A DNA stretch of 64,000 bases from Octopus bimaculoides (taxonomy: Eukaryota), in the NCBI RefSeq assembly GCF_001194135.2, contig NC_068981.1, positions 104,599,087 to 104,663,086 of the forward strand, in the 5' to 3' direction. The number at the start of each line of letters is the position of its first letter. Position 1 is the first letter of the stretch. This document shows positions 17,090 through 58,150 of the stretch, in pieces. Under the pieces are notes generated by a model, which saw only the letters and a program-made list of their open reading frames with translations, did no database searches and was not told the DNA's origin. The position numbers and the translations under genes are program-made.

Positions 17090-18361
17090 GTAAGCTGAAT
17101 TATTTTTGGTTTTATTCATTAAAAGTGTTTGTCAAATTTTTGCCTGTGTTGTTAATTTTAGCATTTTTAGTATCTCAGTTCAGTGAATGCCATTTTAAAA
17201 TTGTTTTTATATCCAATATGAATGGCTGACATGCTTAGTGATGGTCCTCATCCTGTTAAAATATTCTAACTTAATGCATACACATCAGCAGAATTTTATT
17301 GCTTCCCTTCAGACTGGCTATGTTCTTTAGAGACGTAGTTCTTTCAACATAAATTATCTACATTTTGTGTGTGAAATATATATACTTTCAGTGTTTGCAT
17401 GTGTATGTACGTGGGTAGCTATTTACAATGCATGTGCTTTACATTCTCCTTTAGTTTATTTCTTGACCCAAACATGTATAGTCTATATGATTTATATGTA
17501 GTCCAGCACTTTGTTATATTCTTGGTAAAAATATTTTAAGCTCTCTTCTGTAACTAGATATCTCAGGGAAGTAACTCTTACTATTGTTTGCTTGTGTTCT
17601 TTCACTCTTTGAGCGACCTTGTAAGCGGGTATTTAGCTTCAGATTCATGTATGAAAAATATATCTCCTTCCCTGAATAAGATGCTAGTGTGTCACAAGTA
17701 ACAATCCCAATTGGCTTTTGGTATTTATTGTCAACAGTTAGATGAACTGAGGTACTTTAAAATAAAGTGTACTGCTCAGGGACTCAATGAAACTACAGCA
17801 GTAAATTTGTCACCAACGAATTATTGGTAGTCCATTTCCTTCGACCAACAGTGGCTTTAAATTTTCCCATAACCACAACCTCTGCTGAACTGATGTTTCT
17901 ATCTTGAGAAAAAATATGTCCTTGAACTTTTTGATGTTGCAAAAGTTGTGAATAAAACTTCTCATTATTATTTGTGTATCATAACTAACTTACCTACAAC
18001 ATTGAAAGGCTTAATATGTTGTGGCTTTTGTCTGAGAGAAAATCTCAACATTGGCATGTTATGTTAAAAACACAATATATGACAGACTGAGATGAACTCA
18101 TGAGAATGTCAGATGCGTTTCAATGCTTTGGGGCCTTACCAGTAATGTGTACCTGCTTGTCACTTGCCTAAATGAAATTTGTCCCTCGCCAAAAGACATC
18201 TGACATCCTTGTGATTCTCTGCTAGGACAATGCTCCCCTCATTCCAATATATATTGTGATTTTAACACAACGCATCTGCGAAGAAATTTTCTGTCGGACA
18301 AAAACCACACCACATTGGTTTTTTATGGTTGGTGTGTGTGTGTGTGTGTGTGTATGATATG

Positions 18362-21114: not shown

Positions 21115-21337
21115 GTTTAATCCTTTCTACTATAGGCACAAGGCCTGAAATTTGGTGGGAGTGGGGCAGTCAATTAGATTGACCCCAGTATGCAACTGCT
21201 ACTTAATTTATCAACCCCGAAAGGATGAAAGGCAAAGTCGACCTCTGCGGAATTTGAACTCAGAATGTAAGGACAGACGAAATGCCACTAAAAATTTTGC
21301 TCAGCATGCTACCAATTCTGCCAGCTCACCACCTTTC

Positions 21338-23060: not shown

Positions 23061-23454
23061 GACTAGTTGACACCAAAACCTCAAGATATCATTTCAGTTA
23101 GTTAAATCAGCATTTAATAGCTTTTATTATAATATTAATAATGATGTTGAAATATGATTATAGTAATAATTTATAACTTTGGAATAAAGCTCTAAGATTT
23201 GTGAAGTGGAAAAAGAGTCAATTAAGTTAGCTTCAGAACTTGTGGTACTTATTTTAATGGCACTTATTGGTACTTATTTTAATTAGTACTTATTTTAATT
23301 AGTACTTATTTTAATGACTCTTAGAAAAATGAAAGACAAGTGTCCCTGATAGTATTTGAATTTAAAACATAATGGCTCTTAAGCATAAGCAAAAAAGGCA
23401 TTTAATCTAAATTTTATACTGCTTCTACCATTCTATCTCTCTAACAACAACAAC

Positions 23455-23670
23455 AACCCTTTCTACTATAGGTACAAAGCCTGAAATTTTGAGGGAGGGG
23501 TTAAGTCAATTACATTGATCCCAGTACTCAACTGGTACCTAATTTATTGACACTGAAAGGATGAAAGGCAAAGTCGATGTCAGTGGAATTTGAACTCAGA
23601 ACGTAAAGACGGATGAAATGCTGCAAAGCATTTTGCCTGGCATGCTAACAATTCTGCCAGCTTGAGACTT
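23455..23670 (-). mobile_element. SINE family B
   Basis: ccctttctactataggtacaaagcctgaaatttt...ggatgaaaggcaaagtcga...attctgccagct. Confidence 0.85.
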
Positions 23671-26314: not shown

Positions 26315-27050
26315 AAGGCAAGGTGGCAAGCTGGAAGAATTCTTAACATGTTAGGCAAAATGTTTAATGACATTTCATCCGTCTTTACATTTGACTTTTC
26401 CTTTCATCCTCTTCGGGGTCAATAAGCACCAGTTGATCACTGGAGTCTATGTAATCAGCATACTCTCTCCACTGAAATTACTGGCCTTGTACCAAAATTT
26501 GAAACCATTATTAGAAAGGTTATATGCTGGCTGAACTGTTAGTTTGCCAGACAAAATGCTTAGTGCTCTTTCATCTGTCGTTATGTTCTGTGTCCAAATT
26601 CTGCTGAGGTCAACTTTGCCTGTCATCCTTTTGGGTTTGAGGAAATAAGTACCAGTTGAGAAGTGGGCTTGATGTAATAGACTACACCCCTCCCCAAAAT
26701 TTCAGGTATTGTACCTGTAACAGAAAATATATATATTTTTTTTGGTGCTGGCGGTATTGTTAGAATGTTGGATAAAATGCCTTGCAGCATTTCTTTTGAC
26801 TCTATGTTCTATGACCAAATTTCACTGGTCAAGTACTGGGATCAGTATAATTGACTTGCCCCCTCCCTTTAAAATTGGTAGTCTTTTTCCAAAATTAGAA
26901 AGAATTATTATTAATAAAGGTAGTGGCTGAAACTATTATCAGAAAGAATAACTTTGTAGCATTTAGTTATGTCATTGTATATTTTAAGTTCAAATCCTTC
27001 TCTGGTCAATTTTGCCTTTTGTCCTTTTGGGGTCCTAGGTATCACATGTA
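26315..27050 (+). mobile_element. About four head-to-tail SINE B copies (last partial)
   Basis: Successive gctgg..gaa..gtta heads, tttgcct..tcatcct cores and ggccttgt..caaaatt tails. Confidence 0.75.
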
Positions 27051-27670: not shown

Positions 27671-27806
27671 GTGTTCCAGTTACTGCTAAACGAACCATTT
27701 TACGAAGGTTTTCTGCAGAGTACTATGTATGTAAAATTACTAGCTGAACTAGGTCTATTGCCAGACAGCAAGAAAGATGATGGTAGCACACTGGATGTTG
27801 ATGATG
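27671..27806 (+). CDS. SNX13: SNX13 exon (RGS end)
   Basis: tcctag|...|gtaagg; phase 0->1; VFQLLLNEPFYEGFLQSTMYVKLLAELGLLPDSKKDDGSTLDVDD (human YVRMLAELDML). Confidence 0.93.
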
Positions 27807-28519
27807 GTAAGGTTTTACTTTCCAAAAATTATACAAACTTCTGATTTCTTTTAATTTATCATTAAAAATGTAATAACAAATAAATAAATTACATTTAGGT
27901 AATAAGTATAAATATGCTACGACCAACTGAATTTAAGTGTATTTATGTTATTTCAAAATAAGTTAGCATTTTTTCTTTCTTTAAAAAGAATTGCATAAGG
28001 ATTTCAAAATATATTAAATCTATTTGTACCTAAAGATTAAGTGTACATGCAATCTTCTATAGTTTAAATCCATTATTTCAGAGATAATATATATTTCTGC
28101 TTTTGCAAATGCTGTAGCTGTAAAACTACTACAAAGTTTTAATTGAAACTTTGTAACAGTTTGTATGTCTTCAAAAAAGTAGCATAAATTATTCCCATTT
28201 ATTTATGGTCAGCTATTTTAACTGAAATATTTTGATACTATGCTCTCTTTTTTTTTTATTGTTGTCTCTTTTTTTTAAAATTTATTTCATGTCAAATGTT
28301 TAATTTGAAAACCATTGAGTGTATCCTTTACACATTTCCTTAAAAATATATAAAGTGAATGAATTGTGTTTCTACTTTGTTGATTTAGCCTAAACAGCTG
28401 TAAATAAATACATACTTGAGATAGAAGCAGCAATATTTCACTAAAACTGACTAATGTTTTACTATTTTAACCCTAGTCTTATATATTTTTGGAGAGAACA
28501 ATACAATTATTACTGTTAT

Positions 28520-28975
28520 TCTCCCTGGAGGGAAGGTTGGCACAACATTGGAGTATTAAAAAAAAATGCTTTTTGGCATTTCCTCCAGCCCTTTTTGATC
28601 CAAATTCAAATCTCCTTGATATCAGTTTTATCATTGATTCCCCCAGGGCTGATAAAATACAATACCAATCAAGTACTGGGGTCATTGATATTGAATACCC
28701 CCTCCCCTCAAAATTACTGGTGTTGTGCATAAATTAGAAACCATTAATATCATTATTGAGCTGGCAGAATCGTTAGCTTGCTGGATGAAATGCTCAGCAG
28801 CATTTCGTCTATCTTTACATTCTGAGTTCAAATTCTACTGAGGTTGACTTTGCCTTTCATCCTTTCGGGGGTTGATAAATTAAGTACCAGTGAAACACTG
28901 GGGTCAATGTAATTGACTAGCCTCCTCTCCCCAGATTTCAGGCCTTGTGTCTATGGTAGAAAGGATTATTGTTAT
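28520..28975 (+). mobile_element. Two head-to-tail SINE B copies
   Basis: Second copy near consensus (gagctggcagaatcgttag...ggccttgtgtctatggtagaaaggattatt). Confidence 0.8.
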
Positions 28976-29379
28976 TAATAATCTCCAAGATAGGCTTGTC
29001 CTGGTGAATGCCAGTGATTCTGTTCCTAGCAGAATTACTTCATTGGTTGAAAGTCGTCAAAGATTCTGCTTAACATTTTTAACACCAATTTAGATTTACT
29101 TTTTCTTCTCTTCAGTGGCTATCTTTGTCCAGTGTAGCACCTGTTTGGTATTTAAAGAGTTATAAGCCTACCAGCAGGTCCTAGCTTGATCAAACCTTGC
29201 CATTAGGTTGTAAAGGTCACTCTACATGTCTAAATTGATTCTTGACTTGTTTGTTGGACAGATTCTAAGTAGCTTTTGCTTCATATCAGAGTTTCACATG
29301 CCACATCTTGCACCCATTCAACATCATTAACATGTTATATTTATAAACATGAAGCTTAAAAGTTGAGTTTCAAGAAATG

Positions 29380-30526
29380 TGGATGGTGCAAAGTCCCCTC
29401 TCAACCCAAAATAACATGTTGGTGGAACAATGTTGTTGACAGGGCTATTAGAGAAAAGAAACGGGCTTGGAAGGACTGGAGAAAAGAAACAGGCTTGGAA
29501 GGACTGGAAGAACGGTGGTAGCAGGGAATTGTATCAGACTGCCAGAAGGGAAGCTAGGAGACAGGTTTATTTAGCTAGAGGGGAAGCAGATAAGAAAAAA
29601 ATTTGCCAATGTTCTGCGCCATGAGGATCAAAGACTTGAAGTATTTCATGTTGCAAGACAGTGTGTGAGAGAAATGTGTCCGCATGGATGATGATGTTTC
29701 ACTTGCACTAAACATGGCTGCAAAGAGAGAGGTTTGGAGACGCCACTATGAAAGGTTGCTCAATAAAGAGAATGAATGGGAGAAAGGGAGTCTGCTGAAT
29801 GTCGACCCAACAGAGGGACCAGCTATCCGAGTTGACAGTACCATGGTAGATAAAGCAATTAAGAGTATGAAGACAGGGAAGGCCCCCAGCCCATCAAGAA
29901 TTACTGCAGAGAGGCTCAAAATATCTGGCAATGTTGGCTACAGCCTAGTCACCCGTATAGTTAACCAGGTGATACATGATGGAGTCATACCCAATGACTG
30001 GTGTAGCAGCACCATAGTCAACTACTACAAAGGTAAAGGTGACGCTTTAGATACAAATAATTGCAGAGGTATCAAGTTGTTGGATCAGGTAATGAAAGTC
30101 ATGGAGAGGGTCATAGCCCAACTAATTAGGGAGAGAGTCAGTTTAGATGAGATGCAGTTTGGGTTCGTGCCAGGGAAAAGCACCACTGATGGTATATTTC
30201 TGGTAAGACAGCTGCAGGAGAAATACCTAGCCAAAGATAAACCTCTGTACCTGGCTTTCGTCGGCATGGAGAAAGCCTTTGACAGGGACCCCTGATCCCT
30301 TATCTGGTGGTGAATGAGGAAACTAGGGATAGATGAATGGTTAGTGAGAGCTGTGCAAGCCATGTACAGGGACGCTGTAAGTAAGGNNNNNNNNNNAGTG
30401 AGAGCTGTGCAAGCCATGTACAGGGACGCTGTAAGTAAGGTGAGGGTTGGCAATGAGTACAGTGAAGAATTCTGAGTAGAGGTAGGGGTCCAACAAGGTT
30501 CAGTACTCAGCCCCCTCCTATTTATC
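29380..30526 (+). mobile_element. Second RTE-clade LINE fragment, same family as 18362
   Basis: ORF 29684-30295 homologous to 18430-19212; breaks off into (TA)n and a gap. Confidence 0.93.
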
Positions 30527-31324
30527 ATATATATTATATATATATGTATTATTTATATATATATTATATTATATATNNNNNNNNNNNNNNNNNNNNNNNN
30601 NNNNNNNNNNNNNNNNNNNNNNNNNNNNNNNNNNNNNNNNNNNNNNNNNNNNNNNNNNNNNNNNNNNNNNNNNNNNTATATACGCACAGATATGCATATG
30701 TGTGCATGCATGCATGCATTACATTGAATCTTGGTTTTACAAATGCCACATTTTTCCTACAATGGTTAAGAATATTTTTGGAATTTTGAAAGAATTATTT
30801 ACAATACACTCACACACCTCTACATGTGTATAGTATATTATTTTTGTTTTGTTTTATCACAGTTCCACGGATAATTTGGTTCCAAGTAGGTATTGCTGAA
30901 AAGATATGATCTGCAGCCAGAATTTTTATTGTTACTGTTACTGTTGTTACCATATGTTGTTATTATTGTTGTTGGTGCTGTGGTGCAATTTATTGCAAAT
31001 CTTTTTGCACTTTTGCTCAATGATATTTGCTGGCTGTGGAATGCATACTGTTTGCTTTGCCATATCTTAAATCTACAATATTTAAGCCATTATTATTATT
31101 GTTATTATTATTATTAATATTGTTGTTATTGTTGCTAACCCTTTCACCCCCATCCTATATATAAAAGATACTGTGGATGTTGCTATAGTTATTGATTCAA
31201 TATTGCATTGTTGTGTGAGTGATGGCATGTGGTTTGTGCTATTTTAACTGTTGTTTGTTATTAGTTTCTCCGTCAGTTCTTTTTGCATTTTTTTTTTTTT
31301 GTAAATTTTGTTTTCTTTGTTTAG

Positions 31325-31494
31325 TTTGTTCATCCAAGTCCAGTAACCCTTCTCTGCTTGCTACTACTACTACTACTACTACTACCATCACTACTACCAT
31401 TAGTGATTCCACTTGTACTACTACTACCACCACCACCACTAGTGATACCATCTGCTCTACTACTACTATTACTACTACTACTACTACTACCACT
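31325..31494 (+). CDS. Candidate Thr-rich SNX13 exon (unproven)
   Basis: Long T-rich tract, tttag acceptor, cact|gtaagt donor; 170 nt, phase 1->0, no stop; restores frame between 27806 and 45745. Confidence 0.4.
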
Positions 31495-31984
31495 GTAAGT
31501 GCATCTTTGAAAGCTTTAAATTGTTTCACCCTTCACATGACCTATCGGCTATGATTAGTTAAATTAGTACTTATTTTTGTTTTAATATCGTGCATTATTT
31601 CCACATAGCATTCACCTGCTCTTTTAGTTCACAATTACCGAAAACTAAATTAGAAATTATTGTGAAACAGTTGCATGCTGTCCAACATAACAACAAGGGT
31701 ACCTGTCTGTGATGTTATTAAATCTGCTAGAAACAGCAGCCAAACCTCTCTCTAACTGCCTCTTATCTATCACTGAAAAGCAATGCATTGGATAACATGA
31801 TCAAAAGTACACCATTCCTTAAGAAAAGACAGGATAATCATGGTTTCAATATCTTTGATTACAGATCTGCTAAATCGTTGCTGACTTGAGTCAAACAACA
31901 GCAATAGCATTGTTTGTCTATTCTCAGTACTATTTTATACAATATTTAAAATTAAAATATCCACCCCCATCTAAATTAAATTTT

Positions 31985-32200
31985 CTGTTATAGGCACACA
32001 AGGCCTAAAATTTTGGGAGAGTGGGTAAATTGATTACATCAACCTCAGTGCTCAATTAGTACTTGTTTCATTGACCCTGAAAGGATGAAAGACAAAGTTG
32101 ATCCCAACAGAATTTGAACTCAGAACATAAAGCTGGACGAAATGCTGCTAAGCATTTTGTGTGGCATGTTAACAATTCTGTCAGCTCACTGCCTTCCCCC
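31985..32200 (-). mobile_element. SINE family B
   Basis: attgaccctgaaaggatgaaagacaaagttga...attctgtcagctcact. Confidence 0.8.
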
Positions 32201-32297
32201 CCGCCTAAAGTAAATAAAAGACAATTTATTGTTTGTTTAGCCCTGACCAAGCTGATCTATTGTCAAAGTTGTTCCCACTGTGATCATTCTAGATATA

Positions 32298-33549
32298 TTG
32301 GGTCATCCCATAAATAATGCAGTCTTTTTATACTTCTTTTATTTTTCAAAATTAAAACAGTTTTATTTTAATCTCAAATATAATCTCTTTCATTTTCTAC
32401 AATGCTCTTCGATCTGTCTGTTAGATTTGTGAGGTCCCTCTTTCAAAATTAATTTATCTGTGACAAAAAATACTCTTCCGCTATTGTTCTGACCTTGTCT
32501 ACAGAATTCATATTTTTTCCATCCAAATGGTTTTGAAAACTGTGGAATAAATGATAATCAGATGGGGCAGTGCCTGGTAAATATGGTGGATGGGGCATTG
32601 TTTCCCATTCAAACTGCTCCAGCCTTTGGAATGTCATCCTCGCTGTATGTAGCCAAGCATTATCCTGATGGAAGAACACCTTTCATCTTGAAACCAAAGA
32701 TAGTTATTTTCCTTCTAGCACTGACTTAAGCTGCTCACAGTAGATCTCCTTTGTTATCATTTGGTTTGGATTTAAAAGTTCAAAGTGGACTAAACCTTTC
32801 ATATCCCACCAAACAGATAACAACAGCTTACATGAGTGAGGACCTTCTTTAGTCTGGGATACTGGTGTTTCTCCTTTCCCCACCCACTGTCTTCGGTGCT
32901 TGACATTTTTATAGAGAACCCATTTCTCATCACTAGTAACTATTTGGTCAAAAACGGTTCATTAGTGAGACATGACAGCAAAGAAGGACACGCATTCACT
33001 CTCTGCATGCAATTAGACTTGGAAAGTTGACCCAATTTGCTGACTTTCCCAATGGCATACAGGTGTCGATGAATGGTTGAATGATCAAATTCAAGCTTCT
33101 CTGCTCGTTCATCAACAGTTACAATGGGATTTTGTTCCACCCGGGTTTGCAGGATGTCCTCATCGAGGTTTACAGATCTTCCAGGACGAGGCTCATCTTC
33201 TAGGCTGTAGTTACTGGCTTGGAATTTCTGGAACCACTGTTGACACTGGCTTACACTTATTGTCCGGTCCCCATATACTGCATTAATATTCCTTGCACTT
33301 TCTGTTGTGCTGTTGCTTTATTGAATTCATATAGCAAAATATGCTAAATATGCTTCTTTGTCACTTCCATTATATCTTTGAAAAAAAAACTGTTAAAATC
33401 GAGCTGTATTCTTCAAAACTTGCACTAAGAATGAGTACAAGGTAAAATTACTACCTGCTTTTATAGTTAATGCAGGTAGTTTATCCCATCTCCCTCTGAC
33501 TTTTAGTTCATGCAATTGAAAAATCTGCATTATCTATGGGATAACCCAA
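32298..33549 (-). mobile_element. Full-length (1252 bp) decayed mariner, DD34D
   Basis: TIRs TA-ttgggtcatcccataaataatgcag and ctgcattatctatgggataacccaa-TA; HQDNA...HPPYLPGTAPSDYHLF with 34 residues between Asp; stops present. Confidence 0.93.
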
Positions 33550-35110
33550 TACTTCTGTATATTTAGGATTACATTGTCTGATAAGAAATAGACAGCAAAT
33601 TTGCAGAGTCGGTAGAATGTGCTCTGACTCCCTACTCTTTGAGTTCAAATCCTTCCAAGGTCATCTTTATATTTCATCCTTTTTCAGTTGATAAGGTATT
33701 GTCCATGTTGGTTGATTTGTGGTGGTGTTAGAGTATTGGATGAGATATCTTGTGGCTTCAGTTCTGACTCGGTGCACTCTGAGTTCAAATCCCATCTTGT
33801 CTTTGAAAAATGGTGGCACTTCTCTACTATCAGATTTGTGATTGATAGATGGTATAATCAGTTTTAAAATTCAGGAGAAACATTGTTTCCTTGGTTTCAG
33901 TTAGAATATTGACTATCAGTATCACACTAGGATGACACGCAAATTCGTGAAGCGTTCCATATTTTATTTATTATTTTTTTTTTTATCACGGTGGTGCACC
34001 AGCATGACCTCAGCCACTTGGCTGAAACACATAAATAAATATATATATATATATATATAGTTCAAATTTACAGATTAAAGGATGAAAACAGGTGAGGGAA
34101 CAAGTTTGTGTATTGGTTTAACGTTTGGAAAAGTCTTTAATAAATGGAAAAGTCTTTGACGTTTCGAGCCTATGCTTTTCGACATCATTTAGTAAGTTTG
34201 GCTGTTATTTGATGGAGGATTTGCTGTTATTTCTAGCATATCTAACAACCATATAGAGGCTCCCTTATTGGTTTAATCATGTAGTTGATATGAATTATCA
34301 TACAACAGTGTTGATATGAATTATCTTATAACATCTTCAGAGTTGAAACAATTTGTATCAGTGATTGGCAACTTACATGAAGTACAGTACCAAATAAACA
34401 ATGACATACCAAATCTTAGTATTTCAGCATAAAATTACAATCCTTCAGTTTTCCATCTAAAGACTCTTTAATTCCATAGAAGTGATCCTTCTTTTTTTTT
34501 TTTTTTTTAATTTTTTTTTTTATATTAATTCTGTTTCAGAAAATGAAACAAAAACCGTTTTAGTTGTATGACTATCGCATATGATTTTTAACAAGAGAGA
34601 GGTTTTCTGTATTCCAAGAGGTTGCCAATTGCTGATTTACTGAAATGCAGAAATACATTATTCCTTTTGTAAATGGTGAAAATTGTTAACCAGTCAGTGT
34701 TAAAATACTGTATTCAATCACTATTGTACATTATTGATATTGTATAAAAATTGTACTTAACTTACATGATTAAAACAACTTGCAAATTACATATAAATAG
34801 TAATATGCATTGTTGGTTTGCTTATTAGGAACACTGCTGTAATTCAGTATTGTCTTACCATCATCATCATCACCACCGCCATCATTCATTTCTTTCTTTG
34901 TCAGTGTCGGTCTTATTCTCATAGACTTACGTATAGAAATCGTCAAATAATCCTTAACGGGCTGTTGACTCAGTACTAAAGAAGTAGCCAGCCTGGTAGA
35001 CCCCATCCTCCCACCTATTTTCCTCGTGGGTTAAAAACTATAGGCAGAGGTTGTAGGTATGAAGTTTAATGGAAAGTTAAATAAATGGATGAACAAGGAA
35101 TTGTACTTGC

Positions 35111-35162
35111 TTCATTGCTTCATTTTGCTGTGAGCATTCATTGCTTCATTTTGCTGTGAGCA
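35111..35162. repeat. 26-bp perfect tandem duplication
   Basis: ttcattgcttcattttgctgtgagca x2. Confidence 0.95.
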
Positions 35163-35344
35163 TTCATACATGGATCTATGATTGATACTAACGGAAAAGA
35201 TGATATTTGAGATAGCAGTAAACGAACCATACAACAAACACACAGGATATATCGTGTCTCTTCTGAATGTAATAGTTATAAGCTTTTGTGGGACATCAGG
35301 ATGTGCTGAGTTTTATTGTGCAATCATTATATTTACCATAACAA

Positions 35345-35500
35345 AAAGGCAGCGAGCTGGCAGAATCATTACTGTGTCAGACCAAATGCTTAGTGGCATT
35401 TTTCTGGCTTTACATTCTGAGTTCAAATTCTGTTGAGGTTGACTTTGCCTTTCATTCTTTTGGGGTCAATAAAATACCAGTTGAGAACTGGGGTTGGTCA
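35345..35500 (+). mobile_element. SINE family B, partial
   Basis: ggcagcgagctggcagaatc...gactttgcctttcattctttggggtcaataaaataccag. Confidence 0.8.
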
Positions 35501-36078
35501 GGACTTGTGAGTTTAGTAGAAATAATTAAATTTACTATAACAAGATTATTTATTCTTCTGTGGAGCAGAATATTTAGATGAAAACATGCAATTACAATAA
35601 AATATTATAAAAGAAGTATTACAAAAATGATAGAATATTAAATTTATGTGAGTTGTATATGGTTTGGTTTTTAGCAATTCAGTCTACACTTAGTTCCCTA
35701 CCAGCTAAGTTGTGCCTCTTCTCTTGTCAGTAAGTCTTAAAGCTCAGTGATTCTGTTCTAGTCATCTAGTTATAAATAGATCCTACAGGAACTAGTGTTT
35801 GATGATCTTAGCAGTAGGTCTGTGGATGTTATAATTGATGAGTAATTTATTATCCTTGAATGCTGAGTTCAAATCTTGTCATGAAGAAAATTGACAAAAG
35901 ACTATCCATTACCTATACAAGAAAGAAGACCTCAGTGCACTGCTGAACATCTTAGAAGCTGAGAAAAGCCTTCGTTTATTGTACATTATACAGGTGATGT
36001 ACCCAGAGGCTGACTATGTTTGCAGAAATCTGTAATCAAAGGCCCTGCTCAAGTGTTGGGTGCTTTTTCTCCATTCAG

Positions 36079-36086
36079 TGTGTCAG
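36079..36086 (+). CDS. Candidate 8-nt microexon (unproven)
   Basis: tgctttttctccattcag|TGTGTCAG|gtattt; phase 1->0 (VCQ); TGCATG at 36104. Confidence 0.3.
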
Positions 36087-37324
36087 GTATTTCTGACTTC
36101 AGTTGCATGTTGATTAAACCATGTCAAATATGAAATAAATTAAATATAATAATATTGGACAAATTGTTGAGTGAGACTTTGGCTTTGTTCACAGTTCCCA
36201 ATTTTTCTTTATTTTTCTTTCTTTATTTTTTTACTTTGTTCAAGCAAAATGTTGTCACTTGTATATTCCCCATTTTTGCATCTATTAGATAGATATGCTA
36301 GCTAATACTCCACTGTACCAGAAATATTAATAGAATTTCTGCTCTGGTAGATCATTTTTTTTGTTGTTGTTTTGTTTTGTTTTGTTTTTTTAATATTATT
36401 ATATTGCATGTCAGAGTATGTGTGATTTGAATTAGTTTTTTGGCTTTTTTGTTCTTTCTTGTATTAACAGCATTTATTGATGTGTGTGTTTGTGTGCGTG
36501 TGCTATTTAAGATTGTTCGCATTTTTGTATTGCTTTGGAGTTTAGAATATTAAAAAATTCTCTCTCTTTTTATCCTCATTTCAATGCTTGCATGGCATCC
36601 TTTGTGCATTATAATTTTATTTAATTTTTGCATAAAATATTAAATGTTTTGACTGAATTAAGACTTAGAATTAGAACTCGTTATCTTTAATTTTATGGAG
36701 TGAGTAGGTACTGATTATATTGTAGCAAGACTTAGTAGTAATAGTAAAGCTAGAAGTTATATTTTCTAGGTTAACTTTATATTTAATCTCTTGAGTCCTT
36801 AAAATAAGTGTCAGTATTATCTTGAGGTCAGTTCAATTGATTCTCTTCAATACCTGTATATTTGTGATGATAGGCATCTTTTAAGAAATTGTCACAGTTA
36901 TCATTCTTCTTTAGCTATTTTAGAGAGAAATATGTCATTTCTGCAGACTGAGTTACCATTTTTAAAACTTCTAATTTTAATACGTATAATAATGAACCTT
37001 ATATGTCTGAATTCAAGGAAAAGAAATGATACAGTAAAAAATATTTAAAAAAGCTGGAAATGTTAATATTTTTTTTTTTTGCATGTTAAAAAAGTAAAAA
37101 AATAACCAATGTATTGAATGTACTGAAGTTTCAAATATATTATCAAAATTTGTCTACCTCCACTTTATACATATACAATAGTGCAAGGAAACAGCTTATA
37201 GTCACCTAGATAATGCTTCATTGAGATGGGTATTTTTCTCAACATGACAATGATCACAATTCAGCAAATTCTCTCTTAATGCAGAAAGTCTGATATTCAC
37301 ACGGGATATACTTCTAGTAAAACT

Positions 37325-37371
<47 letters not shown>

Positions 37372-37849
37372 CTTGGTATATCAATTAAAAATAAATTCAT
37401 GTCTTATTACTGTTTTAGTAATTTAATAAATAGGACTTGTGTTGATTATTGTTTTCCTTTTGGTATTGATTTATAGATTTTGAAGTTATTCTTCATGTTA
37501 TTTCTCTATAAAATGTCTCTTAAATCTCATAAAAAAAGAAATCTCTGCTACAGGACTTATTAAATATTTCCTGTTAATTTAATGAAGAATTACACTGTCA
37601 CTTGTGAAAGCACTCTTACAATATAAGGTTGAGATATTTGGCCTTTATTCGTGTGATCAATTTATGAAACCAGTCTTTATTAAAGCTGAAAAATAATCAA
37701 GTATATCTATTGTGTGACATAGCCTGTTAAGTGGCTTACAAACTAAAAATACCTGATTCTTAGTTTTAAAGTTTTAAACATTATTCTAAAGTTTGTGTTC
37801 TCTTTATATGTTAAAAAAATATATGTACATATACGGCATCATCACCATA

Positions 37850-39500
37850 GCCATTTCATTCAGGGTCTGTTTTCCTGTTCTTACATGGATTAGACAGGTT
37901 TTTCTCTTTATCTTTTGCCTTACATTTTGTCTCCTAGGTATCTTCCCTATATTCCTCATACAACCAAAACCCAACCCCTAAACCCCTCAGTGATTCACTT
38001 GCAGCTGTACTACAACTGCACAAGCAAAGAACACTTTCTACAGCATCTAGAAGAAGTCACCCACCAGTGCAATATCGGCAAGATGGCCATCAGAAAAGCA
38101 AAGGATAATTCATGCATTGTACAGTCTGCAAACTCTCATGCCTTCTAAATTACAGCTGGGTCTTTTGGTCTCTTGTGGAGACGGTCTCTACAAACTTTGC
38201 AGAATCCTCTTACCTGCCATTCCTCAAACCATGATGGCTCTGTAAGTAGCATTTGTGCTGATAAAAGACCATATATGCTGCTTGTTTTGCTTCTAACTCC
38301 ACAAGGCACACATGCAACAAATTCTTCACAAAATTTCTTCTTCATTCTACCTGTTTCACCATCATAAAAACAGTTATTTTAATAGACCAAAACAACCAGT
38401 GGAATTGTATCCATTCCTTAAAACAGTGTACTTTGACCTACCCCTTGTCCTCATAAAACCTTTGTCTCATTTTCCCTCTTTCTCTCTCTTTACAAGAAAT
38501 TATCTCAATTTGTTGAAACATGACTGTCTCATTCTCAAGATGGGCAATCCTTCTGATCCTTCCTGACTTCTGTCAACCCATCACTTTCACTGTGATAATC
38601 TCGGAGTTGATAGAATAGCAATGTCCTTATATTTGTGTCAGCCTGTTCTTTGATTATATGTCTAACATGAGAATCTTTTATCAGAATTGCTCACCTATGG
38701 CCATACCATCTGTTTTTCATCTCTTTCATCAGAATTTCCTGTTAGGTCACTCCATTTCAGTACATGCTGACAGAAGTTTTCTTCCATTAAGAAACCTTAG
38801 AATTCTCTTCAAATGGTGCATGACAACCTATTTTTTTTTTTCATCAATACCAAGATACAATCACTACACTTAACAAAAAATGACTTGCAGTACCATATAT
38901 AAGCATGAACAACCCACAGCTGATACAAATGCTTAAGCTTCACTAATTCCAATAATCTCTCTTGATGATGTTACATTTCTTGTATCTCTAAAACTTCATC
39001 CCAAAGACTAGGCTTCCATTTTGGAGCCAAAAAATATTTGTACTCTCTCATCATTTGTCAACTGTCAATAAAGTTGATGTGTAACATGTAGTAGAGTACT
39101 GCTCACATACTTAGGATTGTGTTATATGTATAATCATTCTGGACTGCATCCAAAACAAGCCCCTTCAACTGATTGACAAAGACTTATTCATCAACACTCT
39201 ACAAAAAGAAAACTCTAGCTCACATGTACACTGCTTTTATATGCCTTTTCTCTTGCAACTGCAACAGCATCCACTCCTGAATAAGCAAATTTCATAACCC
39301 CTACATAGCCCACCCAGTAACCTATTACTCTTCTTCCCCTCATTTTGTTTCTTTATGTCACTGGCTACTCCCTACTCCAAACATTTTGACCAATCCATCC
39401 TCCTAGAGAATATACTTTGTCCACATTTATCCTGTAGATGTTCACCTGCAGAAATTTTTAGCTGAATATAAAAAAACCTCACTAGTCTGGGAGATCTTTA
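37850..39500 (-). mobile_element. Heavily decayed RTE-type LINE
   Basis: Minus-strand remnants QLQEK (near 39260), NRWYGH (near 38700) and Cys-rich GFCKVCRDRLHKR, in expected order. Confidence 0.55.
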
Positions 39501-39995
39501 AAAGGCAATAGACATCATTCTTCTTCCTTTTTTAATTTGGTAGTGCAAATGTCTTTTTAACGTGATCTGTTTATGACTAAATGCCATAACACATGACTAT
39601 CATCAGCATTGTTGTTGTTGTGAACATTATCATTAGTATCAGTTTTATATCCCTTTTTCTTCTTGATATGGGTTGGATAGGTTTGCAACAGCAGTTTCTA
39701 TATTTGTCACTGTCCTGCATCATTTCTTCTAAAAGTCCCAGTGCTCTCAGATCAGCTTTGCTTCTTTCTGGCTGTTATGTCAACAAATTTAATAACCATG
39801 TGAAATAGTCTTTGGTTTTAGATGCTTAACTGGTTCTTAATGGAACATTAAATTGCTTCTTGCTAAGTTTTTTCTGTTCGCTTGCAACTTTTCCTTTATT
39901 TTTATTGTTTTTGTTGTTTTTTTAGCTAATTGCTTAATGCTTATTTTGCATCATGAAAGGTTCTGTATATTCTTTTAACATTTTTCCCCCAAAAG

Positions 39996-40004
39996 CTACT
40001 TCAG
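39996..40004 (+). CDS. Candidate 9-nt microexon (unproven)
   Basis: ttttaacatttttcccccaaaag|CTACTTCAG|gtatgt; frame-neutral (LLQ in phase 0). Confidence 0.3.
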
Positions 40005-40559
40005 GTATGTGTATGCTTAAACAAGAAAAACAAATGATAGAACAATACTGATTAATTATGTTTAATGTTGAAGGAGTTACTTTCAAGGGGTTGGGGTGGG
40101 GTGGAAGACAAACAATATTGACTTTGTAAAAATTTAATTAAGAAAAGACTTTAAAAAAAGAAAAACCCACTCTAATCAGGGAATGTTACCTCTAGCAAAC
40201 TGATGCCTTTTATAACATTGTATAACTGGATAAGTATCCTTAATCTTAAGTAAGTTGGCTTTAGAATAGACACATGGGATTATAGAAATTCAAATATAAT
40301 TAGAAACAAAGAAAATGAAATGTTACTTTGAAAGTCAGTTTGGTTACTCAGATGTTTTCCATACCAGTGGCCTGTCTCAGTTGGATTGTGTATTCAATAA
40401 CAGCAGAGGAAAGATATAGATGCTGTTTTGAGTGGAACCTTCATTTCTTTAAACATAGCCTTGCCTGTCCCTCTAAATTCATCAGTTTTCTGGTCATCAT
40501 ATAATTTATAATAATTTGAGGTGACATTAGAAATTTCAGCAGCAAGCTGGCAAAATTGT

Positions 40560-40780
40560 TTGTGCACTGGACAAAATGCATAACAGCATTTCTTGCAGTT
40601 CATTACAGTCAAAGTTCAAATCTCGCTGAGGTCAACTTTCATCCTTTCATTGTTAATGAACTAAAAGTACCAGCCAAGTACTGAATTCAATAAAATAAGT
40701 ACCAGTCACTTACTGGGGTCAATGTAATTGACTAACCCTCTTCCCCTGAGATTGCTGGCCTTGTACCAAAATTTGATGTG
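40560..40780 (+). mobile_element. SINE family B, partial or rearranged
   Basis: gttcaaatctcgctgaggtcaactttcatcc...actggggtcaatgtaattgact...ggccttgtaccaaaattt. Confidence 0.7.
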
Positions 40781-42660
40781 ACATTTAAAATTTCTAACAC
40801 CTCTTTTGATATTTTAGCTATTCAAGGCAATATAGTTTGGTGGAAAACAATGATAGAACACTGTGTCCATTCTTTGGAAAGTACATAAGATATCTTTTAA
40901 ATATTCATGAGCTACTAATCTGCCAGTGTGTTACTTCCACTTTAACAAAAAAAAAAACCCCAAAAAACGTTGTGAGCAGGAAGCTAAGTTGTGTGTGTGG
41001 TGAGGCATATAGCTATACTCTTGAATTTCCTCTATTATTTGTTCTTTATTTTGTTGACTGGACAGATGAAAGGCAACATGGAGCCTTGCTGAATCATTGT
41101 AGAGCAACAAAGCTAAATACTGTAAGGCTTTATTTTTGTGTCATACCATTTCTGAAAATTCTTTCCTTTACTCTTTTTTTCTTTTTCTTTTTTTTTTTAC
41201 GTGACTTAGTATGGAGGAAGAGAGGTTAAACTGCCATGTTCTTTGCAGGATCTCCAAGATTAACAAAACTGATGCATTTTATATTTAGTTTTAACACTTG
41301 TAAGTTGGCATCTGAGAGAAAACATGAGCGAGAAGAGAATTTCAGAGGGATGATGTTCTGTGGAGAGGAAGGTTTAGGACTAAGTGATTGGCACAAGGCT
41401 TTAGCAGTAAAATAAAGTAGGGGGTAATGAAAAGAGGAGGAAAGATGGGTGTTTTGGGTTGAGATTGTAATCAACCAGAGAAAGGAACTAAGTGGTATTA
41501 TGATTCTGCTTTCATTAGTCTATAAGCTATACAGTAGCCATACAGTAAATGAGTGTCATTTGATAGCAAGACAATTGGAGCATGCTAAAAATTTCCTTGA
41601 TGATTGTGATAAAACCTTCTCTTTCACTTTGTATGTATACTAAACTTCTTTCAATTCTAATCTTTCATTTCTGTTTTTCTTGTAACATTAATACCAATAT
41701 GCTACATTTACTGCCAAGTTTTTGAATTCTTTCTAGTATTTTAACTGTTTATATTTAATTTACTTGTTTCAATAAAAAAAGCTAAAAAATTTATTATACA
41801 TTCAATATAATAATTTGATGATAATTTACTAAAGAAGTTGTAAAGTTTAAGTATTTTCCCCAGCTGTTGTATGTAAATTTATATATAAGAAGCACAAAAT
41901 AGTCTGAATATTTTTTGTTGCAATTTTTCTAAGTTCAATATTTATTTTGTACATAGTTCTCAGATTTATTGGATGAAGAAGTGTCTTATGTTTATACATT
42001 TCTCAAGTGAGTTTGTAATGCCAAATAACTGAAACACCCTACACACACAGAGCCTACTGGAGTCTTGAAATTAGGAATGTAAATTCATAAACGAGCACAA
42101 ATATAATAACTGTTGCTGTTTAATGCCAGGTCTACCCTGATTGAAAAGACCTTATGATCAGACTTTCTCATCATTATAGCAGTATCAAGGGTCACATTGT
42201 CTAAATGTGAAATGTGTCCTTCCTTTTTTCTTTTTTAAATGGTAGTGCAACAAATCCTAACTTTATGCACCTGCAAAGTTAGTACTGTGGCCCATGGGCA
42301 CAATTCTATAGTTGTTGGATCTTTCTAAAGTCCTTTGGAAAATTCATTTATATAAAAAGAGTACTCGGCGCTGAAAAGATTGGGAACCATGCAGTAGGGT
42401 ATAATTTGAGAGAGATTTATCTGCTACAAAGTCAAGCAGTCAGTTCTAACAAAATAGTTTATGGATGTATGTGGTTAAGTTTTGTTTGTAGTACCTATTC
42501 TGTTAGGATTCAATCTTGACCTGGACATTAATTTTAGTAGTCCTTAACATTCTCAAGTATGAGCTTAAGCAAAGCACATGGATTTAGTTAAATATATGTT
42601 TTACTGTGGGAAGTTAATTGTTACGAAGTATGTGTGCCTGGGCATGCAAGCACACAAGTG

Positions 42661-42697
<37 letters not shown>

Positions 42698-44710
42698 CTC
42701 ATGGTTTTTTTTTCTTGCTCAAATAGTGGTGTAGATTATTGTCAGAGCTGTTACCTTTATAGCTAAATATCTTTCCCCATTCTCAACCATGAAGCCAGAG
42801 TGGGACTTATATTTTGTCATCCAAACAAACAGAAATAAGCAGGGCTATGTGCTTTGCATCGGGATACAACACTAATGGCATTTAGACCTGTTGATTTGAT
42901 GCAGTTTATTAATTTGTAAACATGGTCATTATCAGGAAAATAAAATCTATGTTCTGCAAGTGTATATATACCCTTATATTTGTTGTTGTAGTTTAGCTCC
43001 AAGTCATCCCTGATTAAACAAATCTGTAGTCAGACATTCCAGTGATGGCTGTACTACCTCTTTTTCCAAACTTGTCCTTCATTTTTTAAGATGGCACATT
43101 GTTTATATGAATAAATTTGGTTACTATTTCTAATAGGTTGAGTGACCATTTAGGAATACCTAAGTTGGCAGCCATTTAAGTCTAATCATAATTTGTGACT
43201 AGCTCAAAGTGCAGTGAATCTTATAGAAATTAAAACCTAGTTTTTATTTGCATTTAAGCATATTTCATTTATTTCATAAATATTCCTGCATCATAATATC
43301 ACAACTTCACATTTTCTCTCTTCTATAATTTTTAGATTCCATAAACAATTTAGAATATTCTGTACTAGTACTTCCTTAGTGCCAGGCCATCCCTGATTGA
43401 GCAGGCCTATAATCAAAGGTATTCCAGTTGTCTCATCTTATATTGTTTCCAGGATTAATGTATCTTGGATTACATTATCCTGTGTGCCTTTGTATTTTTA
43501 AGACAGTAGTGTGTGATTTGAGGGAGATTTGGCTGCTACATCTAGCAAATCAAGCAAACCACATAAAGGCACCTGCATTGGTTCGAAATTCCAATGAAAG
43601 AATTTTTACAAAAAAAAAAAAAAAANNNNNNNNNNTTTAAAAAAAAAAAAAAAAAAGAAACAATTAAGATAGTAAATTAACTTTTTTCATTTAGTAATTT
43701 TTAACTCCAAATTCTTTCATTGGAATCTATCCAAGATGATTTTTTTTTTTCATGATGTCTTCAGATAAGCAAAATATGCTGGAGTTATTATGGAATCTAG
43801 TGGTCTATCTAAATAGTGGTTGCATATATTTTGAGGACTGAGTCAATTGACATAATATTATACTTATGAGCATTTGCCAATGCCATCTAGCAGATTCATC
43901 AGGGCAGCCAGACCCAAGTAGCTAAGAATTGATTCATAATATGGAATTACTTGTATGCCTGAAAGATCCTATCATCTCCTGGCTCTCTGCCATGAGTGAG
44001 CTGTGCATTGCATCTAAGAGCAAAGAACTGTATTACTTAATACATCATTATTTGAATGTTAGGAAAACAATTTAAGTTGAATGAGTAATTATAAATGTTA
44101 CTTATAATGAAGGGGAAAGAAAAAAAAAACAAGATAGCAATAAAATAGAAGGGAAAAAATTATTTCTACTCAAAATTAGTGTTAAATCTAAAAGAAAAAA
44201 AATTAACATTTTAATGAAAATTGTTTTTAATAAGAAAATAATTATCAATAATAAAACTAAAATTCTATCATACTGTCATAGAATTTTAGTAAATTCCTGG
44301 CATTTCAACACTTAGTTGAGAATAAACTCATTAATTTTGGGCCATTATCAATAGTCAGAATAGTGATGGGATGTACCCGGTTAATTTGCACGTAGCACAC
44401 TTCATAATGGGATGGTCATAACTAAATTAATCACTGAAATTTAGATGACATTCTTACATTTTATTTATATATTTATCTATCTTTTGTATAGTCAGCTATC
44501 ACTTCAAATTTCGATCATGCCCAACTAGTCTAGTAAATAAGGCCAGTCAAAGATAGAATAATGATCCTATAATACCACACCACAACACAACTGTCATAGA
44601 ATTTTAGTAATCTCCTGGCATTTCAACTCTTAGTTGAGTGTTAACTCCTTTATTTAGGGCCATCAAATTTTTATTGATTCAATTTTTAGGTTGGAATCTT
44701 GGGGTGAACT

Positions 44711-44845
44711 AATTAGACCTGCAAGCTAACTCTTGTGGGGGATTTAATTTGGCTTGCAAACTAATTCTTTTGGAAAATTTGATTAGGTTTACAAATTAAC
44801 TCTTAGGAGGATTTGATTGAACTTTCAAATTGATTTGGATTTTTA
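44711..44845. repeat. Degenerate 34-35 bp tandem repeat, about 4 units
   Basis: aattagacctgcaagctaactcttgtgggggattt / aatttggcttgcaaactaattcttttggaaaattt / gattaggtttacaaattaactcttaggaggattt. Confidence 0.8.
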
Positions 44846-44880
44846 TTTATTTATTATATTGTTTGTTTTGCTTATCACAG

Positions 44881-44895
44881 TGGTCTGCCAGGCAG
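44881..44895 (+). CDS. Candidate 15-nt microexon (unproven)
   Basis: gtttgttttgcttatcacag|TGGTCTGCCAGGCAG|gtaatt; frame-neutral (WSARQ in phase 0). Confidence 0.35.
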
Positions 44896-44943
44896 GTAAT
44901 TTATGTTTAGTTTCTGTAGCTTTAAGTGTGAGAGATAAACAAA

Positions 44944-45113
44944 TATAGGGTGGTCCAAAAGTTGCAAAGAGGTCTGGAATTGTAATAATTTTCACTTAAT
45001 TACATTTTTTTATTTGTAATTTACAAGATGTGATTTTTCACACCTAATGTGTATATATTAAGCAGGACATAAAAGAATTATCAACACTTTCATGACTTTT
45101 GAGCCACCCTGTA
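44944..45113. mobile_element. Tc1/mariner-type MITE, about 170 bp
   Basis: TA-tagggtggtccaaaagt ... acttttgagccaccctg-TA terminal inverted repeats. Confidence 0.8.
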
Positions 45114-45744
45114 CTTAGGTTTGTCACAGGTAGTTTTTTTTTTTTTTGTTATACCCCAGAAATTTTATATTTCTCAGTTGAGCCAATAAGATTTTATCAA
45201 TGTAGTCATTCGATCATCTAGAAATAGCAACAAAATCCCTATTGCATTGGCCCTCTCTACCTTTGTTTTTAAAAAGAAATGGAAAGGCTCATTAAACAAT
45301 GTAGTTCCTGATATTCAAAAAATGACAGGATGGTCATGTCTAGAACACCTTTGATAATAAATCTGTTGCTTCATATGAAGGCAAACACTGTATTATTATT
45401 GAGGGAAGGTGGAGAGATAGGTTGTTTGGTGAGCAAGGATGGAAACTGTATGCATCTTATCACATCAGATCAGTCTGTACTCTTAAGAAGTTTGAATTAG
45501 AGTAAAATAGATGCTAAGGAAACCCTGACAAATGGCAAGAAATAGTAGGGTAAATTCTGGATTAATTCAGTCAGTATAGATAGCTACACATGGTGATGAT
45601 GATGATTTTAATGATTTTTAACATATATTCTCATAATTTCTAAGATTTGATATTTTTTGTGTATTATAAGTTGATATTTTCTTTTTTAATTTTATTTTGA
45701 ATCTTTGTGAAAGATGTATGGTTCTTTTTATTCCCCACTGACAG

Positions 45745-45844
45745 CCTGATGATTCTCTTGGTGATTCCATGTTTGATGGGTATAGTGAGGCAAGTGTATC
45801 TAACTCACAAAATGTTGTTTTATCTGCACAGGTTAGCCAAACAG
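45745..45844 (+). CDS. SNX13: SNX13 exon (RGS-PX linker / PX start)
   Basis: tgacag|...|gtgagt; phase 0->1; PDDSLGDSMFDGYSEASVSNSQNVVLSAQVSQT (human VQLHAYISDT). Confidence 0.85.
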
Positions 45845-46890: not shown

Positions 46891-47990
46891 NNNNNNNNNN
46901 NNNNNNNNNNNNNNNNNNNNNNNNNNNNNNNNNNNNNNNNNNNNNNNNNNNNNNNNNNNNNNNNNNNNNNNNNNNNNNNNNNNNNNNNNNNNNNNNNNNN
47001 NNNNNNNNNNNNNNNNNNNNNNNNNNNNNNNNNNNNNNNNNNNNNNNNNNNNNNNNNNNNNNNNNNNNNNNNNNNNNNNNNNNNNNNNNNNNNNNNNNNN
47101 NNNNNNNNNNNNNNNNNNNNNNNNNNNNNNNNNNNNNNNNNNNNNNNNNNNNNNNNNNNNNNNNNNNNNNNNNNNNNNNNNNNNNNNNNNNNNNNNNNNN
47201 NNNNNNNNNNNNNNNNNNNNNNNNNNNNNNNNNNNNNNNNNNNNNNNNNNNNNNNNNNNNNNNNNNNNNNNNNNNNNNNNNNNNNNNNNNNNNNNNNNNN
47301 NNNNNNNNNNNNNNNNNNNNNNNNNNNNNNNNNNNNNNNNNNNNNNNNNNNNNNNNNNNNNNNNNNNNNNNNNNNNNNNNNNNNNNNNNNNNNNNNNNNN
47401 NNNNNNNNNNNNNNNNNNNNNNNNNNNNNNNNNNNNNNNNNNNNNNNNNNNNNNNNNNNNNNNNNNNNNNNNNNNNNNNNNNNNNNNNNNNNNNNNNNNN
47501 NNNNNNNNNNNNNNNNNNNNNNNNNNNNNNNNNNNNNNNNNNNNNNNNNNNNNNNNNNNNNNNNNNNNNNNNNNNNNNNNNNNNNNNNNNNNNNNNNNNN
47601 NNNNNNNNNNNNNNNNNNNNNNNNNNNNNNNNNNNNNNNNNNNNNNNNNNNNNNNNNNNNNNNNNNNNNNNNNNNNNNNNNNNNNNNNNNATTCAGTCCC
47701 AACCAAAGCCTTGTGAGTGGATTTGGTAGACGGAAACTGAAAGAAGTCCGTCGTATATATGTATATATGTATGTGTGTGTATATGTTTGCATGTCTGTGT
47801 TTGTCCCCCCAACATCGCTTGACAACCGATGCTGGTGTGTTTACGTCCCCGTAACTTAGCGGTTCGGCAAAAGAGACCGATAGAATAAGTACTAGACTTC
47901 CAAAGAATAAGTCCTGGGTCGATTTGTTCGACTAAAGGTGGTGCTCCAGCATGGCCACAGTCAAATGACTGAAACAAGTAAAAGAGTGTG
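46637..47990 (+). mobile_element. Nested, internally deleted family A SINE copies around an 800-N gap
   Basis: attcagtcccaaccaaagccttgtgagtgg occurs before (46792) and after (47691) the gap. Confidence 0.8.
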
Positions 47991-58072: not shown

Positions 58073-58074
<2 letters not shown>

Positions 58075-58130
<56 letters not shown>

Positions 58131-58150
58131 GCTGCTGCTGCTACTGCCAC
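58075..58150. repeat. (ACT)n(GCT)n trinucleotide repeat
   Basis: Directly visible, about 70 nt upstream of exon 58222. Confidence 0.95.

Follow-up and report, generated by a model that had tools for sequence, protein, structure and literature searches.

A probable conserved 23-nt microexon, overlooked by older gene models, in the RGS-PX linker of an SNX13-like gene of Octopus bimaculoides

Introduction

Animal microexons are about 3-27 nt long and often encode parts of linkers or surface loops; many are neural and depend on SRRM4/eMIC, and they are routinely overlooked by gene predictors and spliced aligners. The closest described relatives of the gene considered here are vertebrate SNX13 (RGS-PX1; Colius, Monodon and fish), with which it shares the PXA-RGS-PX order and an acidic, Ser-rich RGS-PX linker (in the vertebrates beginning after ...LAELD(M/L)LK), and an SNX13-like protein of the sea snail Gigantopelta aegis. 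A literature search for SNX13 together with microexons returned no paper joining the two. A preprint splicing atlas uses O. bimaculoides, and SNX genes go unmentioned in it.

We analysed a 64,000-nt stretch of the O. bimaculoides genome (the window, to whose + strand all exons and introns below belong), which carries an SNX13-like gene of PXA-RGS-PX type. On the spliced translation the RGS domain (Pfam PF00615, E 6.3e-10, 39.9 bits against a cut-off of 23.9) ends in what we call exon A, and the PX domain (PF00787, E 1.2e-17, 64.6 bits) follows downstream in exons at 49487, 51666 and 52540. Upstream, PXA was placed in exons at 4351, 5381, 9046 and 12232 by tblastn with orthologues that bear it (P0002, P0019 and others; precomputed PF02194), while Nexin_C lies mostly past the window end; PF08628 is present in the public O. 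bimaculoides model A0A0L8FW13 (= XP_014786612.1, P0003), which is identical where it overlaps the window. This model and a second one, A0A0L8FV91 (P0166), match the window identically from the linker exon that we call exon B onward. Each covers only the C-terminal half of the gene, starting in exon B or in a poly-Thr stretch, and contains neither exon A nor the microexon proposed below. The older octopus models break at the A-B junction, P0003 having exon B's first Met as its start, and because both leave out the conserved 111-nt exon 58222-58332 we regard them as unreliable.

Results

A frame break between exon A and exon B

Exon A, the last RGS-domain exon together with the start of the linker (27671-27806, 136 nt; placed by tblastn and Pfam RGS), starts in phase 0 and ends in phase 1 at the donor G/GTAAGG (slashes mark splice sites), and is translated as VFQLLLNEPFYEGF...LDVDD plus one G (full peptide VFQLLLNEPFYEGFLQSTMYVKLLAELGLLPDSKKDDGSTLDVDD plus G). 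In a contig from a related octopod (L001) the protein is identical, the donor is kept, and there are 9 synonymous differences over the 136 nt; that nine of nine differences are synonymous indicates that purifying selection acts on this exon. Exon B (45745-45844, 100 nt; acceptor ...ctgacag/, donor G/gtgagt) starts in phase 0, ends in phase 1 and reads PDDSLGDSMFDGYSEASVSNSQNVVLSAQVSQT plus G, with residues 1-26 of P0003 identical to it from its first Met onward. The only reading open to it is PDDSLGDSMFDG..., since that frame is shut upstream by a TGA at 45739-45741.

Joining exon A directly to exon B gives GAT GAT GCC TGA, and the two are separated by 17,938 nt, compared with about 0.13-5.6 kb for the other introns placed by tblastn. 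A preliminary description of this DNA had drawn attention to the mismatch between a phase 1 donor and a phase 0 acceptor, to the stop on direct joining and to the outsized interval, and had concluded that a hidden exon is needed; our reading of the frames and of the spliced codons bears these points out, and the bridge must be 2 mod 3 in length to lead from the phase 1 donor to the phase 0 acceptor. No phase 1 acceptor exists inside or just before exon B. A phase 0 donor within exon A, TAT/GTAAAA, was tried and rejected, as it would remove the conserved VKLLAELGLL.

A candidate microexon at 30863-30885

When 18, and then more, SNX13-family proteins were compared with the interval by tblastn, no exon appeared until the Gigantopelta protein was added. 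This protein (XP_041367207.1, P0019, 948 aa) was the top match of an exhaustive HMMER protein search over 1.84 billion representatives (E 4.5e-87, 60% identity, full length), and in the stretch flanked by its matches to exons A and B it reads ...LSIDD-VPRIMWFK-ADEP.... Exactly one AG/23 nt/GT site in the octopus interval encodes V-PRIIWFQ in the needed phase, and it lies at 30863-30885 (phase 1->0) in the context cacag/TTCCACGGATAATTTGGTTCCAA/gtaggt, with the donor CAA/GTAGGT. Together with the G from exon A these 23 nt encode V-P-R-I-I-W-F-Q, so that octopus VPRIIWFQ and snail VPRIMWFK have six of eight residues in common (the V of the split codon, then P, R, I, W and F). The pair scores 39 under BLOSUM62, whereas the next best real AG-23nt-GT site in the interval reaches 13; dinucleotide shuffles gave a maximum of 23 in 300 when splice sites were required and of 32 in 60 when they were not, with a score of 39 reached in none of the 300 and none of the 60.

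The site also fits a microexon in length and splice sites (about 27 nt or less, canonical AG...GT). Its 3' splice signal (30838-30862) is 77% pyrimidine over -25 to -4 and ends ...ttttatcacag, and with 3.7 for the acceptor and 6.9 for the donor on a crude splice-site scale the site comes third among 1076 frame-compatible solutions. No TGC, the UGC enhancer of SRRM4/eMIC type, occurs in the 80 nt preceding the 3' splice site. Separately, a (TGCA)4 run 146-160 nt upstream of the microexon amounts to three UGCAUG motifs; it is a microsatellite adjoining an assembly gap.

At the protein level the correspondence with Gigantopelta extends beyond the insert. The two share domain order, a junction after ...GLLPDSK.DDG.TL.(V/I)DD, the eight-residue insert, the acidic Ser-rich linker behind it and the PX-domain sequence ...ISQ(S/T)GIVKE that comes next, and they differ at two of the eight insert residues (M/I, K/Q) and in a 30-aa cassette that follows the insert in two of three snail isoforms. 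A search of the interval for an octopus counterpart of this cassette returned only a low-complexity, non-significant match on the poly-Thr stretch. The microexon peptide is better conserved than the surrounding linker. Among 199 SNX13-family proteins inspected, Gigantopelta is the only lineage besides octopus with the peptide, and the Lottia, Mya and Tegillarca models differ from it at the junction; these models, like the old Octopus ones, look wrong there, and perhaps lack this microexon too.

Taken together, these comparisons allow us to propose with high confidence that the interval consists of two introns of the SNX13-like gene parted by one 23-nt microexon, 30863-30885. Spliced in this order, exon A (phase 1), the microexon and exon B (phase 0) would yield ...LDVDD-VPRIIWFQ-PDDSLGDSMFDG..., and the spliced SNX13 protein of O. 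bimaculoides and O. sinensis is predicted to read ...LDVDDVPRIIWFQPDDSLGD.... Inclusion would hold RGS and PX in a single reading frame and would add a short hydrophobic Trp-Phe patch to an otherwise acidic, Ser-rich linker. Since 23 nt is not a multiple of three, skipping would truncate the protein rather than merely remove a few residues, and because it would place a stop (GCC TGA) straight behind the RGS exon the microexon is most likely constitutive. The microexon is probably included in octopus mRNA, and the peptide itself is presumably under constraint. The preliminary description had seen a candidate for a regulated cassette here, an idea that fits poorly with an exon that looks constitutive and whose counterpart is kept in all three Gigantopelta RefSeq isoforms (XP_041367206.1/207.1/208.1; P0165/P0019/P0164).

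The window ORFs near exons A and B, near the microexon and near the poly-Thr stretch were looked up by exact sequence (Logan and others), as were P0003 and P0019, in each case with no match. With the direct-join peptide as query, a word-index protein search brought up nothing but a related octopod's intron read-through ORF, and further searches of this kind, which returned no full-length mollusc protein and also missed P0019, have little bearing on octopus transcripts.

Alternative readings of the interval

A 170-nt poly-Thr exon (31325-31494; acceptor ...tttgtttag/, donor ACCACT/gtaagt), one of the candidates of the preliminary description, could bridge the interval either in place of the microexon, in which case the two would be mutually exclusive by frame (23 + 170 nt jointly shift it), or together with it through an acceptor at 31339 (156 nt, phase 0->0). 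The stretch has no stop in phase 1->0, its acceptor is rich in pyrimidines and its donor, GTAAGT, fits the consensus; that donor is joined to 45745 in P0166 / A0A0L8FV91, whose initial exon is 31222-31494. Ser/Thr-rich linkers are known in other SNX13-family models (e.g. Helobdella P0040), and the optional 30-aa cassette of Gigantopelta sits at the equivalent place, with a weak and non-significant likeness between SRDQSPSM and SKSSNPSL. However, most of the candidate is a degenerate (CTA)n microsatellite (31361-31494, 44.7 copies) that ends exactly at the donor, leaves all three frames open and resembles microsatellites elsewhere in the window, such as 58056-58150. It contains no Pfam family and has no counterpart in the Gigantopelta protein, and the acceptor at 31339 scores -2.7. 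Moreover, P0166 makes it an initial exon with an ATG upstream of the supposed acceptor, which is the pattern of an ab initio extension, and both public models drop the conserved exon 58222-58332. We consider it unlikely that this exon truly bridges the interval, and regard the poly-Thr stretch at most as a weak rival or alternative exon.

Also quite improbable, in our estimation, is that the microexon and the poly-Thr exon form a frame-enforced, mutually exclusive pair, each member by itself restoring the frame and offering its own RGS-PX linker, or that the microexon acts as a regulated on/off switch. In the latter case skipping would bring a stop after RGS, and with it a PXA-RGS-only product or nonsense-mediated decay; either case would mean that an ER-endolysosome tether is under a form of splicing control specific to molluscs.

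A tandem donor 5 nt downstream of the exon A donor (AAG/GTTTTA, 27811/27812) is in phase 0 and would dispense with any extra exon, since its direct join to exon B (...DVDDGK-PDDSLG...) stays in frame. We hold this to be highly unlikely: the donor scores -1.2 against 9.5 for G/GTAAGG, its GT is lost in the related octopod contig (AAG/ATTTCA) where the phase 1 donor is kept, and the join supplies one residue where the orthologue has eight.

That the bridging exon is hidden in an assembly gap was the first possibility tested, and it can be taken together with an assembly error or a pseudogene lesion as the source of the frame break. The interval does contain three N gaps, and the length of one of them is not fixed. 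The first intron of the proposed structure, from exon A to the microexon (27807-30862, 3056 nt as assembled), holds two of these gaps; self-BLAST and Pfam further show in it a SINE-like repeat at about 28757-28968 and a fragment of a reverse-transcriptase retroelement. The retroelement fragment (29481-30530) carries an RVT_1-like ORF that is about 81-84% identical to a copy at 18382-19391 and matches PF00078 with E 6.7e-6, below the gathering score. It is interrupted by a 10-N gap (30387-30396) with an exact 44-nt duplicate on its flanks; as these flanks map to overlapping segments of the second copy (19206-19303 and 19261-19391), the sequence is continuous and the gap represents an unmerged contig overlap. 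The 100-N gap (30577-30676, unstranded), 187 nt upstream of the microexon, falls within a (TA)n simple repeat where the retroelement breaks off, and because its true length is not fixed by the 100 N the length of this intron is approximate. The second intron, from the microexon to exon B (30886-45744, 14,859 nt), contains repeats and is still the longest in the window; further cassette exons (phase 0->0) may lie inside this intron, whose 10-N gap (43626-43635) falls within a poly(A) run. To judge from the assembled sequence, then, the three gaps conceal nothing needed for bridging, while outside them stands a bridging exon that is complete and has its splice sites intact. Considering also the purifying selection indicated for exon A, we give a hidden or broken exon very little weight, and infer that the size of the interval is due to retroelement, SINE-like and simple-repeat insertions and not to several hidden exons.

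The four sites named in the preliminary description (31325, 36079, 39996 and 44881) are present with AG/GT, and 30863-30885 was not among them. The interval holds 1004 AG and 1002 GT dinucleotides, and it offers 1076 single-exon solutions of phase 1->0 without a stop, ten of them with decent splice-site scores, and because of this abundance the proposed candidates are no more than chance would provide; SNX13-family tblastn and peptide comparison lent them no homology support. A chain of three tiny exons at 36079, 39996 and 44881 (8, 9 and 15 nt, respectively) is stop-free with AG/GT on all three, but it demands three unsupported microexons in succession without similarity to any orthologue, where 30863-30885 fully accounts for the orthologue's junction peptide, and we find it scarcely credible. 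In effect a single other bridging exon takes the place of all four candidates, the outcome that the preliminary description had itself named as counting against them, reached here through homology and not through transcripts.

Discussion

What is new here is most likely a conserved microexon overlooked by older gene models. The outcome is at the level of annotation, an ordinary and easily overlooked gene structure and no new kind of biology: with the 23-nt exon in place, the PXA-RGS half and the PX-Nexin_C half would form one normal SNX13, and the gene model would be mended. The vertebrate SNX13 proteins inspected have no counterpart of the microexon peptide, and in contrast to the octopus and snail proteins their linker reads ...DPSFRGSDDGDGESFNGSPTGS... 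without a PRI(I/M)WF-like insert. The PRI(I/M)WF patch appears to be common to a cephalopod and a gastropod within an otherwise fast-evolving linker, which may point to a short linear motif that molluscan SNX13 has conserved.

Unlike neural microexons, the octopus exon has no UGC motif within 80 nt upstream of its 3' splice site. In other respects it resembles the microexons of animals in general, with its length of 23 nt, its canonical AG/GT and strong pyrimidine tract, its position in a disordered inter-domain linker, and its counterpart in a sea-snail orthologue.

Reading frame between the RGS and PX exons

An SNX13-like gene occupies the + strand from about 4351 to 62994, its exons following the order of the PXA, RGS and PX regions in SNX13 proteins of other animals, and both RGS and PX are detected by Pfam in its spliced translation. 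From the first Met of the RGS-PX linker exon (exon B, 45745-45844) onward this translation is 100% identical to two older public half-models of the Octopus bimaculoides protein, A0A0L8FW13/XP_014786612.1 (P0003) and A0A0L8FV91 (P0166), and the identity covers even the exact length of one microsatellite, which marks the window as O. bimaculoides DNA taken from an assembly with gaps. The last RGS-domain exon, exon A (27671-27806; 136 nt), opens in phase 0 and closes in phase 1 at GAT GAT G/gtaagg. Exon B is preceded by ...ctgacag, and its sole frame running on into the PX domain, CCT GAT GAT..., has a TGA stop shortly before the exon; joined directly, the two exons read GCC TGA. The interval between them spans 17.9 kb, and the remaining introns, inferred from tblastn blocks, about 0.13-5.6 kb. 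The phase mismatch and outsized interval noted in the preliminary description are thus borne out. A second frame of exon B, +2, is likewise free of stops over the whole exon (LMILLVIPCLMGIVRQVYLTHKMLFYLHRLAKQ), so that a frameshifted transcript would not stop inside it.

A probable 23-nt microexon in the interval

Word-index protein searches returned fragments and half-models only. When 1.84 billion cluster representatives (50% clustering) were searched exhaustively with HMMER, the best match was a full-length protein, sorting nexin-13-like isoform X2 from the gastropod Gigantopelta aegis (P0019, RefSeq XP_041367207.1; E 4.5e-87), which between the blocks aligned to exons A and B reads ...TLSIDD-VPRIMWFK-ADEPIDVSS.... 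Scanning the interval for this motif gave a single fitting site, 30863-30885 (+), ttttgttttatcacag/TT CCA CGG ATA ATT TGG TTC CAA/gtaggtatt, which tblastn recovered as well. Together with the last G of exon A it encodes V-P-R-I-I-W-F-Q, and its 23 nt convert phase 1 to phase 0 exactly as needed, giving the predicted product ...GLLPDSKKDDGSTLDVDD-VPRIIWFQ-PDDSLGDSMFDGYSE.... The BLOSUM62 score of VPRIIWFQ against VPRIMWFK is 39, compared with 13 for the runner-up among the interval's 32 open AG-23nt-GT sites, with a maximum of 23 in 300 dinucleotide-preserving shuffles under the same splice-site requirement, and with 32 in 60 shuffles without it. The tract ahead of the acceptor is 77% pyrimidine, and the site splits the interval into an intron of 3056 nt, by its assembled length, and one of 14,859 nt. 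The peptide is common to the octopus and the gastropod orthologue, and is conserved above the surrounding linker. A canonical microexon is present in the correct intron, strand and phase, and on the basis of homology, phase and splice sites the hidden exon is most likely this single conserved one.

Three overlapping Rbfox-type motifs (UGCAUG) lie 146-160 nt upstream of the acceptor, in a (TGCA)4 microsatellite at 30703-30719 (+) that adjoins the 100-N gap. The window has no other cluster of this kind, and simple sequence alone may explain it.

Genomic Logan contigs of a related octopod (SRR11869384, SRR11869390 and SRR11869391) are about 80% identical to the window across 1.5 kb of intron; over exon A there are 9 differences in 136 nt, all synonymous, and the protein is identical. 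A tandem donor 5 nt downstream of the phase 1 donor (AAG/GTTTTA) was rejected, as it scores -1.2 against 9.5 and its GT is lost in an octopod contig where the phase 1 donor persists.

Other candidate bridging exons, gaps and repeats

We consider it improbable that the 170-nt poly-Thr stretch at 31325-31494 is a real alternative exon: its splice sites are good, and P0166, starting at ATG 31222, splices its donor (31494) to 45745, yet the stretch is a degenerate (CTA)n microsatellite that terminates exactly at the donor, is open in all three frames and is without counterpart in the snail protein. Used together with the microexon it would throw the reading frame off, unless splicing chose the weak acceptor at 31339. 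Moreover, P0166 also omits a conserved 111-nt exon at 58222-58332 (+; phase 0 to 0; acceptor ...ccttacag/, donor AAAGGG/gtaaga), whose product MEILVTPLRSSVRTVGTAVKHMPDVAEGVGKLFNVKG matches MDTIVNPLRSS... in Gigantopelta and Pinctada. In both P0166 and P0003 ...ELARK is joined directly to LTANLPRSE at 62923, which reflects either alternative splicing or a second annotation miss.

Concealment in an assembly gap, the alternative named in the preliminary description, is not likely at any of the three gaps of the interval. At 30387-30396, the 10 Ns separate two identical 44-nt stretches (30343-30386 and 30397-30440), and the sequences on either side align to overlapping parts of the other copy of this reverse-transcriptase element, at 18.4-19.4 kb. 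Here overlapping contig ends within a retroelement were left unmerged; the sequence runs on without a break, and the assembly is 54 nt too long at this point. The second gap, 100 N at 30577-30676, falls in (TA)n where the retroelement breaks off, and the third, 10 N at 43626-43635, in a poly(A) run. In the next intron, which runs from exon B to the first PX exon (49487), an 800-N gap (46891-47690) could also hide sequence.

Sites at 31325, 36079, 39996 and 44881, earlier proposed as hidden exons, showed no orthologue similarity and do not rise above chance, as the roughly 1000 AG and 1000 GT dinucleotides of the interval yield 1076 stop-free, frame-mending AG..GT exons of length 2 mod 3 (10 with reasonable splice-site scores). 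The reading that a hidden exon is required stands, and the proposed exons most probably give way to the single 23-nt microexon at 30863-30885.

The two copies of the reverse-transcriptase-bearing retroelement (RVT_1 in Pfam; 18358-19969 and 29360-30530, +; about 81-84% identical) lie in gene-sense orientation in different SNX13 introns, the second interrupted by two assembly gaps. A SINE-like family of about 200 nt occurs intronically in both orientations (28757-28968, 31982-32195, 35345-35496, 21118-21335, 23446-23662, 8610-8809 and 26460-26731), its copies 70-84% identical to one another and some giving recurrent pseudo-ORFs (...HGCVVRSLLPNHMV..GSVPLHGTLGKCLL...). Intronic mariner/Tc1-like transposase remnants lie at 5745-6101 and 63702-63998 (+; e.g. 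...FLWGFLKERVYANKPETLVQLKENI...). Inserted repeats, rather than further hidden exons, would account for the size of the 14.9-kb intron.

Interpretation and comparison with known systems

The microexon is probably constitutive in octopus, because skipping it would place a stop codon directly behind the RGS exon, and because its counterpart is kept in all three snail isoforms. The hydrophobic PRI(I/M)WF patch in its acidic flanks may be a functional short motif and not a mere frame spacer. We regard the microexon as an ordinary gene-structure feature overlooked by the old models; a literature search found no paper connecting SNX13 to a microexon. Among 199 gathered SNX13-family proteins (from vertebrates, arthropods, an annelid, a brachiopod, a cnidarian and other molluscs) the peptide is present in the Gigantopelta proteins only. 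Models from Lottia, Mya and Tegillarca read differently at this junction, in what look, judging from the protein models, like predictor work-arounds. Two Gigantopelta isoforms carry a 30-aa cassette after the microexon counterpart, and a similar optional phase 0 to 0 cassette in the 14.9-kb octopus intron is possible. The octopus exon can be placed among animal microexons in general. Unlike the well-studied neural, SRRM4-dependent set, it has a length not divisible by three and lacks UGC in the 80 nt upstream of its acceptor.
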